A DNA stretch of 64,000 nt from NCBI GenBank assembly GCA_965644315.1, contig CBFFRQ010000038.1, forward strand, positions 62,001 through 126,000, in the 5' to 3' direction. Each line of letters begins with the position of its first letter. The stretch's first letter is position 1. Below, piece after piece: positions 19,256 to 23,707 of this stretch. This stretch comes from Caecitellus pseudoparvulus. Lineage: Eukaryota; Protista; Bigyra: Bicosoecida. Below the pieces are notes generated by a model. That model saw only the letters and a list, made by a program, of their open reading frames with translations. It had not been told where the DNA came from and did not search any database. A program made the translations under genes and the position numbers.

Positions 19256-19927
19256 TCACCCCTCCAGGACACGTGAGCGGAGCAGAACCATGTCCCTCCG
19301 AGCCAAGCGCAGGGGTGCCACCTCATGGCCACTCCAAGCCCAAGCCCGAGCTAGATGCGGCCACAAGGCAGCCCGCACAGCAGCAGTAGCCTCTGGCAGC
19401 TCATCTGGGCGCGCCCCGCCGCAAGTCACCGTCGCGCTGGCACCCCCTGCTAGTAAGGCGTCCACACACGCCAGGCTCTTGGACCGCACGGCAAAGTGCA
19501 GTGGACTCCCGCCTTCGCCTTCCTCCAGCTGTGGCTCTGCCCCTGCCGCCAACAGCACCTCCACGGCTGCAGCGTGGCCTTGAGAGGCTGCGATGGCCAG
19601 GGGCGTGATGGCGCTTGTGACTGGTTCTCGGGTCCACCGGATCGCCTGGATCAACCCTGCTGATGCCGCGAAGGCGTTCACGTTCGCGCCACCTTCGATG
19701 AGGGCCGCCAGCGCGCCCACGTGCCCCATCCGCGCGGCCTCCTGCAGAGCGCTCCGAGTGCAGGAATGCTGGCCCTCCGGCACACCATCGATGTCCACGC
19801 CAGGGACGCCCAGAGCCTCACGGATGGCGGCAACATCCCCTGTTGCCGCTGCTTGCTGAAGCTGCACCATGGCGCCGAAGATGTGCTGGCGCTCTGGCGC
19901 AGGCGGCGTGTCTTGGAGGAACGGCAT
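19256..19927 (-). CDS. Ankyrin-repeat protein
   Basis: SALQEAARMGH..LIEGGANVN, TPLAIAASQGH..LLAAGA, SPLHFAV..LLAGGA. Confidence 0.88.
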   Translation of the reverse strand: MPFLQDTPPAPERQHIFGAMVQLQQAAATGDVAAIREALGVPGVDIDGVPEGQHSCTRSALQEAARMGHVGALAALIEGGANVNAFAASAGLIQAIRWTREPVTSAITPLAIAASQGHAAAVEVLLAAGAEPQLEEGEGGSPLHFAVRSKSLACVDALLAGGASATVTCGGARPDELPEATAAVRAALWPHLARAWAWSGHEVAPLRLARRDMVLLRSRVLEG

Positions 19928-20046
19928 GTTGGCGTGTTGAGCTGGGTGGTGCAATCGCCGCACCCCTCACGCCGGCCCCCACAGCGAGACAGGCGGGGCA
20001 GCAGCTCACACAATGCCAAGAGACCACACGGCGAGCGAGTCCACTT

Positions 20047-22602
20047 TCAAGCAGGTGGGTTTTGCCTGCCACTGAGCCCTGCCCGTTCCCAGCTGGCGAC
20101 CACTGCCGGGAAGTCTTCCAGCAACTCTTGCCTGGAGAACCACTCATCCTCACTCACATCTGTGCCAGCCCAGTGGACCTTGTACATGCACGTGGAACCC
20201 TTGACGCGCTCCTCGACGATGTGCTCAATGAAGTCGGTGGCCTCCTCCTCTTGCGGTGGAGACACATGAGCCGGCACCGAGACAGGGCCAGCCGTCGCCC
20301 GCTCCGCGACAGCGTGGGGCTGACTCGTCGCCCCTCCCGCCCTGGGCGCTTCCCAGGGCTGGGCTGCATGCTTGCCCCACTCCGGGCCTGCCGCGTGGCG
20401 CTCTGCCGCCTCGGCGTCAGCTTCAGCGGCAGCATTCAAGGCGCGTGCTTGCGCCCGCAGGGCGGCGTTGGCGTCCACGAGGTACTTCAGCACGTAGCTC
20501 TGGTTGGTGAGCTCCTCCTCTCGCTGGGCCTGGGCAGCTGCTGCCAAGGCGAGGGAGCGCTTGGCGGATGCCCAGGCCTTGCCAGCGCCGCCCAGTGTCG
20601 CGCCCACCGCCTGCACAACACGATGCATGCGTTCTGCGAGTTCTTCGCAGTGAGCAGCTAGAGTGGCAGCATCGGCGGTGTTTGGATCGGGGTGCTGCAC
20701 CTCAAGGCGCTGCAAGGCGAGCGCCACATGTTCGTCGCCAGCAAGCATCCCAGGGTGTGCCGTGTGCACACTGTCCATGGCCGCGCTGGCCTTGTACCCG
20801 CCCAAGTGCGGCCCAAACTCGCTCGCAGTGCGCTCGCCCAGTGGATCTGCAGCGGCCATGCTTGCCTCCGTAATGGCACGTGAGCCATCTGCTCGGTGCT
20901 GCAAGGCAGCGGCTGCAGCCCACTGCTCCGCCAAGGCCGTGTCCTGCTCCAGGGCCCCACGCACGACGCCCAGACAAGCGTCGTACATGTTTGTCAACAT
21001 GCCGAACAGCCGACTGGCCAAGGCACCTGGGGCCGTCCCACTGCTTCTGGGAGCAGATCTCGAGGGGGAGGGTGGCAGGGCTGCCTGGTGTCGCTGGGCC
21101 TGGGCCAAGGCTGCGTCTAAGGCCTGCTTTAGCTCCCGAATGCGCCCTTCGTACCGATCAGCATCCTGTCGTGCCTGGGCCATGAATCGCCTCTCCACGC
21201 TGGCCAGCTGCGCCTGCAGCCGGGCACAGAGGACGGCGTAGTCCACGGCCTGGTGTTGGACTGGGCGTGACGCCACACGCATGCAGCGGCTAGCGAACTG
21301 CAGGGTGCTTAGGGTCTCCCCCGCGGAGCGCACTTCCGGGGACAGGGTGGCGATGAGGTAAGTGCTGGCGTCACCCCCAAGGCAGTCACTGAGCAGGCGG
21401 GTGAGCTTGGAGTCACGAAAGGGGATGTGCCCGCCGCTCTGCCCTGCCAAGGCGGCGATGACGTTGCCCAGGGCTGACAGGGACTGATTGATGCTGCGAG
21501 CCTCCACCAGCCGGGTGCCCTTGCTCGTGGTGCGGCGCACACGCTCGGAGCCTGCGAGGTCCACAAGCATGAGCTTGCCGGTGAGGACCTGGGAGGTCTC
21601 CTGGCCCTGCACGAGGGTGGAGCCTTCCTGGCGCACGTGCACGGTGAGGATGGTGTGGGCACGGGAGGAGGTGGCGTTCATGGCGGTGGGGCCCATGGCC
21701 CGGTTGGCCAGGCCCCAGTTCAGCAGCTCCACTGCCTCGCGGAAGGACAGGACGGGCAGCTCTTGCAGCCCGTCGACGTAAAAGCCACGCCCCGGTGCCT
21801 CGCGCACTGGCAAACCCTCTGCACGGGCGCCAGCCACCACCTGCTCCCTTGCACGGGCGGTTTGCCCTGGGTGGCGGCCGCGTCCCCGTCCGTCAATGTC
21901 GGCGCTGCTGATGCGGGTGCTGGACTGCCAGGACGGGGTGGCAGCACCCTCTGCCGTGGCAGTGCTGCCCATTCCACCACGGGTGGCAGCCATGGGCTGT
22001 GAAAATAGGTCGTGCACAGACTCCAGGTATACTTGCACGAAAGACATGGTAACGCTCCACGTCTGCTCAGGGCTTTGCGCGATGGCACCGAAAATGTGGG
22101 AGAGCGCCCTCGGGATCAGGCCCATGGGCTGTGTTGCCACCTCTTCTAAGATTCCCATCGTGTATGTTTTCCCAGTGCCAGTTTGGCCGTACTGTGCGGG
22201 TGAAGCAAGGTATGCCGTGGCGGAAATTGAGGCCAGGTGAAGCTTCGCCTGCATGATGAAACTCACAGCCAGTATGGACCCATGGTAGCCCTGGAGCACC
22301 TTTGCAACAAGAGGACCACCAACTACATTATATACGTCATCCTGCCGCACGGAAGCACAGAGGCAATGCTGAGAGGTAGCGCACGGCTGCCGAGGCTGGC
22401 GCTGGCAGCTCACCTGCGTGCTACTCGGCCCAAACACGGCATCATAGGCGTAGGCCCTGGCCTTTCCCCCCACATCCAAAGAGACGGATTGCCCACTTCG
22501 ACTGCTGTCCACTGTTACAGCAACTGGATCCCCTGGCACGCCCGGCCGGCATCGCACTGCAACTTTTACGCGTTCCTGACCAGTGGCAGATGCCCTGGCC
22601 AT
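20047..22602 (-). CDS. N-terminal motor kinesin with coiled coil and C-terminal chromodomain
   Basis: RVKVAVRCRP, P-loop AYGQTGTGKTYT, NATSSRAH, LVDLAGSER, HIPFRDSKLTRLL. In-frame stop-free introns 22413-22342 and 22266-22192. C-terminal IEHIVEERV..YKVHWAG..EDEW..LLEDFP. Confidence 0.93.
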   Translation of the reverse strand: MARASATGQERVKVAVRCRPGVPGDPVAVTVDSSRSGQSVSLDVGGKARAYAYDAVFGPSSTQVSCQRQPRQPCATSQHCLCASVRQDDVYNVVGGPLVAKVLQGYHGSILAVSFIMQAKLHLASISATAYLASPAQYGQTGTGKTYTMGILEEVATQPMGLIPRALSHIFGAIAQSPEQTWSVTMSFVQVYLESVHDLFSQPMAATRGGMGSTATAEGAATPSWQSSTRISSADIDGRGRGRHPGQTARAREQVVAGARAEGLPVREAPGRGFYVDGLQELPVLSFREAVELLNWGLANRAMGPTAMNATSSRAHTILTVHVRQEGSTLVQGQETSQVLTGKLMLVDLAGSERVRRTTSKGTRLVEARSINQSLSALGNVIAALAGQSGGHIPFRDSKLTRLLSDCLGGDASTYLIATLSPEVRSAGETLSTLQFASRCMRVASRPVQHQAVDYAVLCARLQAQLASVERRFMAQARQDADRYEGRIRELKQALDAALAQAQRHQAALPPSPSRSAPRSSGTAPGALASRLFGMLTNMYDACLGVVRGALEQDTALAEQWAAAAALQHRADGSRAITEASMAAADPLGERTASEFGPHLGGYKASAAMDSVHTAHPGMLAGDEHVALALQRLEVQHPDPNTADAATLAAHCEELAERMHRVVQAVGATLGGAGKAWASAKRSLALAAAAQAQREEELTNQSYVLKYLVDANAALRAQARALNAAAEADAEAAERHAAGPEWGKHAAQPWEAPRAGGATSQPHAVAERATAGPVSVPAHVSPPQEEEATDFIEHIVEERVKGSTCMYKVHWAGTDVSEDEWFSRQELLEDFPAVVASWERAGLSGRQNPPA

Positions 22603-22693: not shown

Positions 22694-23707
22694 TCACACT
22701 GCACCGGGGAGGACGGCGTCAGGCGGTGTACTCCTAATTCTGGCTGTGGCGCTGGATTGCGCACTCAGCCGCCACGTCACATCCAGACGCTGCCCCAGCG
22801 CAGAGACCAGCTCAGAAGGAAGCTGAAAGTCGCTCTGTGTTTGTTGTGTGGGCGCAGGCGCATGGGCTACAATCACAGCGTTCAAGTGTGGGGGGTAGTG
22901 GCCGGCAGCGCCCTTGTTCAGGCAACAAGCCAGCCCCACACGCCACGCGTCGCCCACAGCTGCCGCTACGGTATGCATGATACTCTCTTGCAGCGCTTGC
23001 AGCTCTGTTCCGTCCTGGTCAGCCTGGCCCAGCGTGTTCAGGAGGAGAACGCCGCCAGGGGAGACGAGGGATGCGGCTGCGCACAGCATGTCTTGGGTGG
23101 CTACGGCTGCATGCGGCGCAAGGAGACTCCCAGAAGCAGGCTTTTCCTCAGGGACGTCGAGAACGACGGCGTCGAACGCCGCGCACCCGAGCTTGGAGGG
23201 CTGCGCCAGCGTCTGCGTCGCATCGCACGTGCGCAGGGACAGTGTGAGGCCGACCTTCCGCGCCACAGCCTCGGCGAGCCCCGTGGCCAGGCCTCCAACG
23301 ACTTCGCTGATCTCTAATCCCACTGCTGTCACGCCCCCCACTCCCGCCCACCCATGGGCGGCCGCGACAGCGAGCTCCCCGAGCCCAAGGCCAGCCAAGA
23401 GCAAAGCTGGCCGCTGGGTGTTGCCAAGGGCAGCGTGAAGACAGGCAAGCATGAGAACGTGGTAAGGGAGGACTGGAAGGCTTGGGTCGGACAGGAATAT
23501 CGCACTGTGCACGGGCCCAGCTTGGACCTCTGTTGTGCTCGGGGCGTCGGTGCTTTGGGAGCTGACCAGGCGCAATTCCCGCACCACGCCGGCTGGGTGG
23601 TGCACGTCCAAGACGCACACCCAGCGAGTGGCGCAGTCGCCGTCCGGGAGACAAGCCACTATTTCACCGCTTGGGGTGATGCCGTGACCACCCTCCCCCG
23701 CTGCCAT
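22694..23707 (-). CDS. Class I SAM-dependent methyltransferase, spermidine-synthase-like fold (METTL13 C-terminal-like)
   Basis: LLAGLGLGEL (motif I), VGLEISEVV, CDA, FDAVVLDV, LVSPGGVLLLN. Confidence 0.7.
   Translation of the reverse strand: MAAGEGGHGITPSGEIVACLPDGDCATRWVCVLDVHHPAGVVRELRLVSSQSTDAPSTTEVQAGPVHSAIFLSDPSLPVLPYHVLMLACLHAALGNTQRPALLLAGLGLGELAVAAAHGWAGVGGVTAVGLEISEVVGGLATGLAEAVARKVGLTLSLRTCDATQTLAQPSKLGCAAFDAVVLDVPEEKPASGSLLAPHAAVATQDMLCAAASLVSPGGVLLLNTLGQADQDGTELQALQESIMHTVAAAVGDAWRVGLACCLNKGAAGHYPPHLNAVIVAHAPAPTQQTQSDFQLPSELVSALGQRLDVTWRLSAQSSATARIRSTPPDAVLPGAV

Follow-up and report, generated by a model that had tools for sequence, protein, structure and literature searches.

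A kinesin of Caecitellus pseudoparvulus with a C-terminal chromodomain, and an apparently undescribed family of such motors in marine protists

The cargo of a kinesin is determined by its tail, and most kinesin tails have no recognisable domain. The chromokinesins, kinesin-4 (KIF4) and kinesin-10 (Kid/NOD), tie chromosomes to microtubules and bind DNA or chromatin through tail elements other than a chromodomain. Chromodomains of the HP1, CDY and MPP8 type, with three strands and a helix, are found in chromatin proteins, and the aromatic residues of their three-residue cage (Y24, W45 and Y48 in HP1) are needed for methyl-lysine binding in HP1-type domains. Clamping of a peptide by β-strand addition is a general habit of chromodomains, and it is not confined to the nucleus that such domains act: the chromodomain of cpSRP43 works in plastids, outside chromatin. 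Kinesin-2 motors (KIF3A/B/C and OSM-3/KIF17) have an N-terminal motor followed by a coiled coil. In Wickstead et al. 2010 (PMC2867816), the armadillo-repeat kinesins (ARK) are equated with Kinesin-19 and are widely distributed among eukaryotes, and the tables list KIF4 as motor-only, in keeping with the statement of an earlier sequence-only reading of the present locus that classical chromokinesins lack a chromodomain.

The locus lies on the minus strand of the window, by which we mean the whole 64,000-nucleotide stretch of C. pseudoparvulus DNA that was analysed (contig CBFFRQ010000038.1, positions 62,001 to 126,000). The sequence-only reading had placed an intact kinesin motor and a terminal chromodomain (20235-20086) in one frame. 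Pfam, AlphaFold2, Foldseek and the conservation of the frame all bear out a kinesin joined to a genuine chromodomain fold, at nearly the position claimed. The features are as follows.

20047..22602, minus strand: whole gene from ATG to stop, three exons (list of open reading frames and sequence)
22414..22602, minus strand: exon 1, 63 codons (splice joint in the X1 contig; GT donor at 22413-22412 in the sequence)
22342..22413, minus strand: intron 1, 72 nt, GT..AG, in frame and stop-free (skipped in a metatranscriptome contig)
22267..22341, minus strand: exon 2, 25 codons (metatranscriptome contig and family alignment)
22192..22266, minus strand: intron 2, 75 nt, GTGAGT..CAG, in frame and stop-free, directly before the P-loop
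21268..22575, minus strand: kinesin motor domain (Pfam Kinesin, E 1.5e-80 on the intron-containing ORF)
22188-22165, minus strand: P-loop GQTGTGKT (motif position)
21817..21999, minus strand: low-complexity motor-loop insertion, about 60 residues long, flanked by the conserved DLF and LPVRE
21669-21655, minus strand: switch I, SSRAH (motif position)
21561-21544, minus strand: switch II, DLAGSE (motif position)
21429-21400, minus strand: HIPFRDSKLT, the microtubule-binding HIPYR-type motif (motif position)
21079..21246, minus strand: neck motif VDYAVLCARLQ and first long helix, a probable dimerising coiled coil (helix 3-56 of the tail model)
20392..21030, minus strand: helical middle tail (helices 73-285, pLDDT 70-90; conserved columns)
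20233..20391, minus strand: disordered Pro/Ala-rich linker with a short acidic patch at its end (pLDDT <50, tail residues 290-335)
20068..20229, minus strand: C-terminal chromodomain, three strands and a helix (Pfam, AlphaFold2, Foldseek and PDB profile)

The frame is unbroken between the ATG at 22602 and the stop codon at 20049-20047. The mechanical ORF reaches further upstream, to a GTG at 22764, and the ATG was chosen according to the N-termini of the family members. The spliced product has 802 residues, or 851 if the introns are read through; the 49 extra residues occur in no homologue, with the 24 residues of intron 1 missing from 14 of 14 homologues in the family alignment and the 25 residues of intron 2 missing from all of them. 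A seawater metatranscriptome contig (library X1) lacks precisely 22342-22413 and 22192-22266, both with GT..AG ends. The contig that shows this splicing is a short one, of 199 nt at a depth of about 3, the shorter side of its intron 2 joint is only 23 nt, and X1 is flagged 'probably DNA'. All searches reported here took the unspliced frame, whole or in part, as the query. Further RNA contigs, from run X6, cover the chromodomain (20050-20200) and the tail upstream of it (20271-20421); none among the RNA contigs bridges 20421-21287. A single transcript running from motor to chromodomain in C. pseudoparvulus is thus inferred from the open frame, its conservation and the transcript of a relative.

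Comparison with a related strain showed that 17 of the 25 listed exonic differences fall at third codon positions (p = 4e-4), which indicates that purifying selection acts on the whole frame, the tail included. The frame is also conserved in a relative and syntenic with its orthologue (gene order TIMELESS, unknown gene, kinesin). At the level of sequence comparison, this conservation and synteny, together with the third-position excess in the related strain, exclude a chance open frame.

Once the introns are removed, all four motor motifs are present and the protein belongs to the kinesin superfamily (PF00225), with ATPase and microtubule-binding motifs that by sequence are intact. The earlier description of the motor as intact therefore holds for its motifs, but the ORF from which it was read includes the introns at 22413-22342 and 22266-22192. 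Among solved structures, the motor scores best against kinesin-2 (OSM-3, 188 bits; KIF3B, 185 bits), with kinesin-1 at 167 bits and KIF4 lower than kinesin-2 at 165 bits. The general layout of an N-terminal motor followed by a coiled coil is likewise that of kinesin-2, but the neck, the tail and the terminal domain all differ and the motor groups apart. Its neck is VDYAVLCARLQ rather than the NEDPKDA type, and it lies outside the kinesin-2 clade, which was separate from the chromodomain kinesins with a support of 99 in both motor trees. Canonical kinesin-2 genes of the same genome (loci L015 and L032), whose necks are of the NEDPKDA type, fall into that clade of support 99 together with the named KIF3 and OSM-3 references of the trees. 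Unlike the ARK proteins, the kinesin in the window has no ARM repeats, as judged by the lack of any Pfam match to them in the ORF.

Within these trees the motors of the chromodomain kinesins are monophyletic (SH-like 94 with FastTree; SH-aLRT 94 with IQ-TREE), and their sister clade, with a support of 84-87, consists of kinesins with PH-domain tails. The PH-domain protist kinesins (P0004, P0005, P0008, P0009, P0019 and P0130) share the plan of a motor, a long helical tail and a small terminal binding domain. They differ in that the terminal domain is a PH domain, a binder of lipid or protein, and in lacking both the neck motif in its exact form and the blocks conserved in the tails of the chromodomain family. 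The sister pair suggests that terminal domains have been swapped on a shared chassis, of which it would be a natural case.

Database searches returned about 20 clusters with the kinesin-chromodomain architecture, including FNF29_04526 of Cafeteria roenbergensis and one transcriptome ORF. Fifteen database matches are annotated with Kinesin plus Chromo, and in the ten that were scanned (10/10) the motor is N-terminal and the Chromo match lies at the extreme C-terminus. Further members fall below the Pfam threshold and still carry the chromodomain motif; because the domain scores right at that threshold, the family is under-annotated. By the motor phylogeny, motor and chromodomain were fused a single time, and all complete members of the clade have retained the fusion. 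The result is a small, conserved and apparently undescribed kinesin family in marine protists, whose sole named member comes from the stramenopile Cafeteria. No description of a kinesin with a chromodomain was found in the literature searched, which included the tables of the kinesin-repertoire papers and excluded most subscription journals; within that literature, this is not the already described family that the sequence-only reading had allowed for.

In order, the tail consists of neck helix, hinge, conserved helical region, disordered linker and terminal chromodomain. The neck motif, which the sequence-only reading had likened to the necks of armadillo-repeat kinesins, is common to the family and to a large, wider clade of protist kinesins. 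The middle of the tail contains two blocks conserved in the family, FGPHLG...H.QH and a second long helix that contains REEELTNQSYVLKYLVD (20523-20458). The last 15 residues of the linker before the chromodomain include at least three acidic residues in 12 of the 15 family members. When the whole tail model was compared to the PDB with Foldseek, the chromodomain alone gave matches, the helical middle having no look-alike at the sensitivity used. A structure atlas search with the same model returned just weak rows containing chromodomains (TM at most 0.25), and the best score in a language-model atlas search with the tail, 0.80, was within the range of chance.

On the whole intron-containing ORF, Pfam Chromo (PF00385) scored 24.7 bits, just below its cut-off of 25.1. 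The score rose to 29.3 bits (E 8e-7) for the last 100 residues and to 30.1 bits for the last 80, and the model matched 15 of 15 family members with a best E of 7.8e-13. AlphaFold2, run on the last 80 residues with the 15-sequence family alignment, gave three strands and a C-terminal helix at a pLDDT of 92-95. Foldseek matched this to the chromodomains of MPP8, Rhino, Chp1, CDY1 and HP1 at a probability of 1.00, with a TM by target of about 0.8, and several of the matched PDB entries are Y24 variants, made to study the cage residues. A family profile searched against the PDB found CDYL, CDY1 and HP1 at E-values of 6e-8 to 1e-6 (CDYL, 6.5e-8). A word search with the chromodomain region alone, against 5.8 billion sequences, gave nothing within the E-value limit, the domain being too short for such a search to inform.

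The core residues and the central cage tryptophan of HP1, CDY and MPP8 are kept, whereas the other two cage positions are not aromatic. In the window the three positions are Asp, Trp and Thr, with the Asp and the Thr each aligned against a Tyr of the CDYL cage. Across the family, the first is Asp in 13 of 15 members, the second is Trp in all 15, and the third, never aromatic, varies between Thr, Ser and Ala. The three-residue aromatic cage of the methyl-lysine readers is therefore absent, with the Trp alone kept, as had been noted from the window's sequence and as now holds for the whole family. Beside the cage lies an Asp-Glu pair that never varies in the family, and the residue adjoining it is mostly acidic. 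Residues D48, E49, W50 and F51 (D-E-W-F, in place of the usual T-W-E-P) are identical in the 15 members. Two extra residues separate strand 3 from the helix, and the domain ends a motor protein, whereas HP1, CDY and MPP8 are chromatin proteins. Because two of the cage aromatics have been lost, the degenerate cage argues against classical trimethyl-lysine reading and lowers its odds.

Two rival explanations concern the fusion itself. Adjacent kinesin and small chromodomain genes might seem fused in the gene model since a GC-rich genome (56-74% GC here) gives long open frames, and the stretch 20421-21287 is the part that the RNA contigs leave unspanned. However, 2.5 kb pass without a stop codon, the third-position bias continues through the tail, and the region linking motor to chromodomain shows protein-level conservation across 14 homologues. 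The fusion recurs in gene calls made independently on many contigs, and in a relative's assembled transcript (P0002) a single complete ORF covers all of the architecture, so that an artefact of this kind is scarcely credible. The chromodomain might instead have been captured recently, in this lineage, from a mobile element of the genome such as a retrotransposon, as the sequence-only reading had suggested. The genome does hold many mobile-element chromodomains, among them repeated AT-rich ORFs of 350-370 residues with a canonical chromodomain at the end. The window's domain, however, is 34-52% identical to the chromodomains of its orthologues (38-67 bits), against at most 26 bits and 16-36% identity, in short BLAST alignments, for 12 chromodomains of its own genome, mobile-element ones included. 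Recent retrotransposon capture is unsupported because the domain is so much nearer to its orthologues, and the fusion is old: it occurs in a monophyletic motor clade, with the signature D-E-W-F...DFP..V..YE in every complete member, including Cafeteria. We regard such a capture as very unlikely. The 'W....L...FP' ending that had been taken as integrase-like is an ordinary junction between strand β3 and the helix of a chromodomain, no hallmark of integrases, and aligns with CDY1. A very ancient origin of the domain in a mobile element may be entertained, the domain being too short for deep phylogeny.

What the chromodomain does is a separate matter. As a literal reader of chromatin, it would bind a histone tail, methylated or not, while the motor moved or held chromosomes or heterochromatin on the mitotic spindle. 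Its nearest solved relatives by both fold and profile are the H3K9/H3K27 readers MPP8, CDY/CDYL, HP1, Rhino and Chp1, the central Trp and the peptide-pairing strand are conserved, and an acidic pocket with an acidic linker would fit a very basic histone tail. Against this, all 15 members lack two of the three cage aromatics, and no obvious nuclear localisation signal was seen in the tail by eye; we hold this role to be a possibility on the unlikely side. The domain could, in a different proposal, be a module for regulation or self-association, with two tails pairing in the manner of chromoshadow domains to form a docking platform or with the tail folding back to inhibit the motor. Auto-inhibition by the tail is common in kinesins. 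The shadow domains of HP1 also lack the outer cage aromatics, their spacing from strand 3 to the helix matches that of the kinesin chromodomain, and chromoshadow domains are among the Foldseek matches of lowest rmsd (0.9-1.2 Å). Pfam Chromo_shadow (PF01393), however, matched weakly and in only two of the 15 members (E 0.0095), far behind the best Chromo match; a homodimer prediction for the chromodomain returned no answer, at a score of 0.00 in a run without controls, and counts neither for nor against. We think this proposal improbable. The loss of the cage could also mean that the domain binds no peptide and has a structural or regulatory role instead.

The explanation that we favour, and consider likely, is as follows: the gene is functional and transcribed, and encodes an N-terminal-motor kinesin of a conserved family in which the chromodomain clamps a basic peptide as a cargo module. 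As N-terminal motors generally do, it would walk towards microtubule plus ends, dimerised through its neck and later helices. The chromodomain would then recognise cargo by clamping an extended, Lys/Arg-rich peptide through β-strand addition, aided by a pocket of Trp plus carboxylates. Such a pocket would suit unmethylated or lowly methylated lysine, or arginine, better than trimethyl-lysine. Two kinds of partner, which we rate about equally, come into question: a histone tail, in which case the protein would be a chromokinesin in the literal sense, and an adaptor unconnected with chromatin. The more specific idea of a first kinesin to read chromatin via a real chromodomain, with an Asp/Trp half-cage for un- or lowly methylated histone lysine that links chromatin state to chromosome movement in stramenopile mitosis, we put forward as rather doubtful.

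In either case, the motor ends in a peptide-reading module that is well understood and has been retained through the divergence of a whole clade, which offers a concrete route to the cargo. With a histone tail as partner, the chromokinesin idea would have been invented independently, and by a different mechanism, in a major eukaryotic group that has been little studied, and the family would have the same function as KIF4 and Kid/NOD. With another partner, it would provide a conserved chromodomain with an Asp/Trp pocket outside chromatin, comparable to cpSRP43.

The motor-loop insertion varies across the family: the orthologue P0001 has it in partly conserved form, and most members carry an insert, which is variable. 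A third intron within it (about 21990-21815) was considered and rejected, since the insert is conserved in the orthologue and contigs from X2 (21644-22077) and X1 (21496-21902) cross it unspliced.

A search of the frame with Pfam gave a kinesin motor (E 1.5e-80) and, at the extreme end, a Chromo match of 24.7 bits with the whole frame, 29.3 bits with the last 100 residues and 30.1 bits with the last 80, the curated cut-off being 25.1 bits. The Chromo match bears out both the coordinates 20235–20086 of the sequence-only reading and its claim that motor and chromodomain share one frame. In an AlphaFold2 model based on the 15-sequence family alignment, residues 21–74 of the last 80 form a strand-strand-strand-helix (pLDDT 92–95), and the model of the whole tail contains the same chromodomain fold. 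Foldseek against the PDB returned only chromodomains and chromoshadow domains (MPP8, Rhino, Chp1, CDY1, HP1 and CBX; probability 1.00, TM by target ∼0.8), and the family profile matched CDYL, CDY1 and HP1 at E 6.5e-8 to 1e-6. Pfam Chromo was matched by all 15 members and Chromo_shadow, weakly, by two. The chromodomain of the kinesin tail is real but atypical.

The atypical feature is the pocket. When aligned with CDYL, CDY1 and HP1, the tryptophan is common, whereas their first cage tyrosine faces a conserved aspartate in the kinesin family and their third tyrosine faces threonine. The earlier suggestion that only the central tryptophan is retained thus holds across the family, positions 1 and 3 never being aromatic.

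Pocket residues in the chromodomain kinesins (family counts)
Cage position 1 (HP1 Y24): Asp in 13/15, Ala or Pro in 2/15
Cage position 2 (HP1 W45): Trp in 15/15
Cage position 3 (HP1 Y48): Thr, Ser, Ala, Glu or Asp; aromatic in 0/15
Motif after the cage: Asp-Glu-Trp-Phe in 15/15
Residue ahead of Asp-Glu-Trp-Phe: acidic in 13/15

Because the cage replacements are themselves conserved, we read the pocket as changed rather than decayed. In methyl-lysine readers, a carboxylate beside the aromatic ring shifts preference from trimethyl-lysine to unmethylated or lowly methylated lysine or arginine. By analogy, the Asp/Trp pocket may have the same preference.

From its N-terminus, the protein has a motor whose catalytic motifs are intact, then a neck helix and a hinge; a conserved helical region follows, and a disordered linker (∼50 residues) leads to the folded terminal chromodomain. 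From what is known of kinesins and chromodomains in general, the tail helices would dimerise the motor, the N-terminal motor would walk to microtubule plus ends, and the flexible linker would present two chromodomains, each clamping an extended basic peptide. That peptide may belong to a non-chromatin adaptor or cargo, the reading that we tentatively favour at somewhat below even odds. A histone tail as partner, which would make the protein a literal chromokinesin, is somewhat less likely, and a regulatory or self-association role for the chromodomain is improbable.

The minus-strand open frame starts at GTG 22764 and ends with the stop at 20047. We place the biological start at ATG 22602: the gene upstream has its end at 22694, and proteins of the family start only a few residues ahead of the conserved RVKVAVRCRP strand. 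Two stretches of 24 and 25 residues, one after '...STQ' and the other just ahead of the P-loop, were missing from all 14 aligned homologues, and both have GT..AG borders on the coding strand. A contig from X1, a seawater library registered as metatranscriptomic (record 6, 0 mismatches), joins 22414 to 22341 and 22267 to 22191. Exactly 72 and 75 nt are skipped, and the gene therefore has three exons and encodes 802 residues.

Gene model of the kinesin
22602–22414, minus strand: exon 1 (X1 splice joint)
22342–22413, minus strand: intron 1 (72 nt; GT..AG, in frame, stop-free)
22341–22267, minus strand: exon 2 (X1 splice joints)
22192–22266, minus strand: intron 2 (75 nt; GT..AG, in frame, stop-free)
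22191–20047, minus strand: exon 3 (X1 splice joint)

Because neither intron contains a stop and both lengths are multiples of three, a plain ORF reading runs straight on and makes the protein 49 residues too long. The frame had been called intact: it is continuous from kinesin to chromodomain, but the 851-residue reading includes two introns. With the gene model so corrected, a kinesin motor ending in a chromodomain is confirmed by Pfam, AlphaFold2, Foldseek and the family. The query in all searches was the unspliced frame, whole or in sections. A low-complexity insert of ∼60 residues in a motor loop (21999–21817) was rejected as an intron: contigs read through it without splicing, and the closest orthologue shows it in partly conserved form. 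Similar hidden introns may occur in other 'intact' ORFs of this GC-rich genome.

RNA-seq contigs from metatranscriptome X6 cover 20050–20200 in the chromodomain and 20271–20421 in the tail ahead of it, and a contig from run X2 covers 20001–20236. No RNA contig spanned 20421–21287. Continuity of the message has indirect support: no stop interrupts the frame, the protein sequence of the tail in between is conserved in all homologues, and a relative's complete ORF from a transcriptome (P0002) likewise runs from motor to chromodomain. It is further supported by the exonic differences from a closely related strain (run X7), where 17 of the 25 listed fall at third codon positions (binomial p = 4e-4), an excess that runs along the whole frame.

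P0001, the closest orthologue at 50% identity, sits on a metagenome contig whose neighbouring genes match, in the order TIMELESS, an uncharacterised gene of about 320–340 residues, kinesin.

22697–23707, minus strand: 337-residue gene with no Pfam match, directly upstream of the kinesin; same position at L001:4254–5210 of the orthologous metagenome contig, between TIMELESS and the kinesin

On the other side, the next gene has the same orientation and encodes an ankyrin-repeat protein (19259–19927); its ATG lies only ∼120 nt (19927–20047) beyond the kinesin stop. Inspection of this spacer by eye showed no AATGCA hexamer.

The fusion recurs as a conserved family. A word search of the protein database found 15 proteins annotated with Kinesin and Chromo, and in each of the 10 that were scanned the motor comes first and Chromo forms the very C-terminus. 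Members share the neck VDYAxLCARLQ, the middle tail block FGPHLG...H.QH, a second long tail helix with ...QNQRYVLKYLVD... and the chromodomain signature D.VE.IV.HR...LYKVHW.G...EDEWF.R.DL..DFP..V..YE. By this signature P0007, P0049, P0084 and P0145 are further members, sub-threshold in Pfam or missed by precomputed annotation, and domain-based architecture searches therefore under-count the family. These four score 18–25 bits or nothing with the Pfam chromodomain and are unannotated as chromodomain proteins; in P0084 the second tryptophan is replaced by tyrosine (EDEYF). A profile search gave no further members among its best 120 matches, and the family therefore seems to be small, with about 20 clusters (90% identity) among up to 8000 candidates. 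Only Cafeteria roenbergensis FNF29_04526 carries an organism name; named relatives in the wider clade are stramenopiles (Triparma, Pinguiococcus, Chrysophaeum, Hondaea and Achlya).

Literature searches for a kinesin with a chromodomain, across 8.4 million papers, returned no description or study of this architecture. It is absent from the tables of a survey of 1624 kinesins with 105 architectures in 45 genomes (PMC2867816), and it goes unmentioned in a survey of photosynthetic eukaryotes (PMC1434745). The architecture is visible in the automatic annotation of Cafeteria proteins, and hence not hidden. Motor and reader fold are both known; what appears new is the conserved pairing of the two, in which the pocket is altered.

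Motor trees were built from the family, other database hits, 28 kinesins of the Caecitellus genome and named KIF3 and OSM-3, the only references from published families. The chromodomain kinesins formed one clade (SH-like 94, FastTree, 171 rows; SH-aLRT 94, IQ-TREE LG+G4, 76 rows), with only the long-branched P0145 outside. Their sister group, with support of 84–87, comprises kinesins ending in a PH domain, long protist proteins of 1279–1496 residues (P0004, P0005, P0008, P0009, P0019 and P0130). This suggests that the terminal binding domain was swapped on a common motor-tail chassis. Both groups are nested in a protist clade (99) whose other large branch (98) consists of kinesins with a VDYA-type neck. 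Kinesin-19, which holds the plant armadillo-repeat kinesins (PMC2867816), is one candidate for a named family to which this clade may correspond. Against solved motors kinesin-2 was nearest (OSM-3 188 bits, kinesin-1 167), a ranking by score and not membership; on the trees kinesin-2 was a separate clade (99) that excluded the chromodomain kinesins and included Caecitellus loci L015 and L032. Canonical kinesin-2 genes are in keeping with a flagellate.

The Caecitellus genome contains 25 Chromo matches. Among them are repeated AT- and Lys-rich ORFs of about 344–372 residues that end in a canonical chromodomain with the full aromatic pattern and stand in a genome of about 65% GC.

Chromodomain-ended repeat ORFs: contigs C212, C180, C198, C19, C40, C144, C149 and C208; loci L004, L005, L008–L010 and L013

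These ORFs probably represent a multi-copy mobile or viral integrase-type element. The kinesin chromodomain scored 38–67 bits against orthologous kinesin tails and ≤26 bits against twelve chromodomains of its own genome (16–36% identity over short aligned stretches). Because the orthologue scores are higher and the motor tree shows a single origin, the proposed capture of a retrotransposon domain is not supported as a recent event; a 55-residue domain cannot address an ancient one.

In the same genome (30.6 Mb) we counted 81 kinesin-motor matches, roughly 50 loci by coordinates, which is many for a genome this small. Three near-identical kinesin copies lie on contigs C122, C54 and C45.
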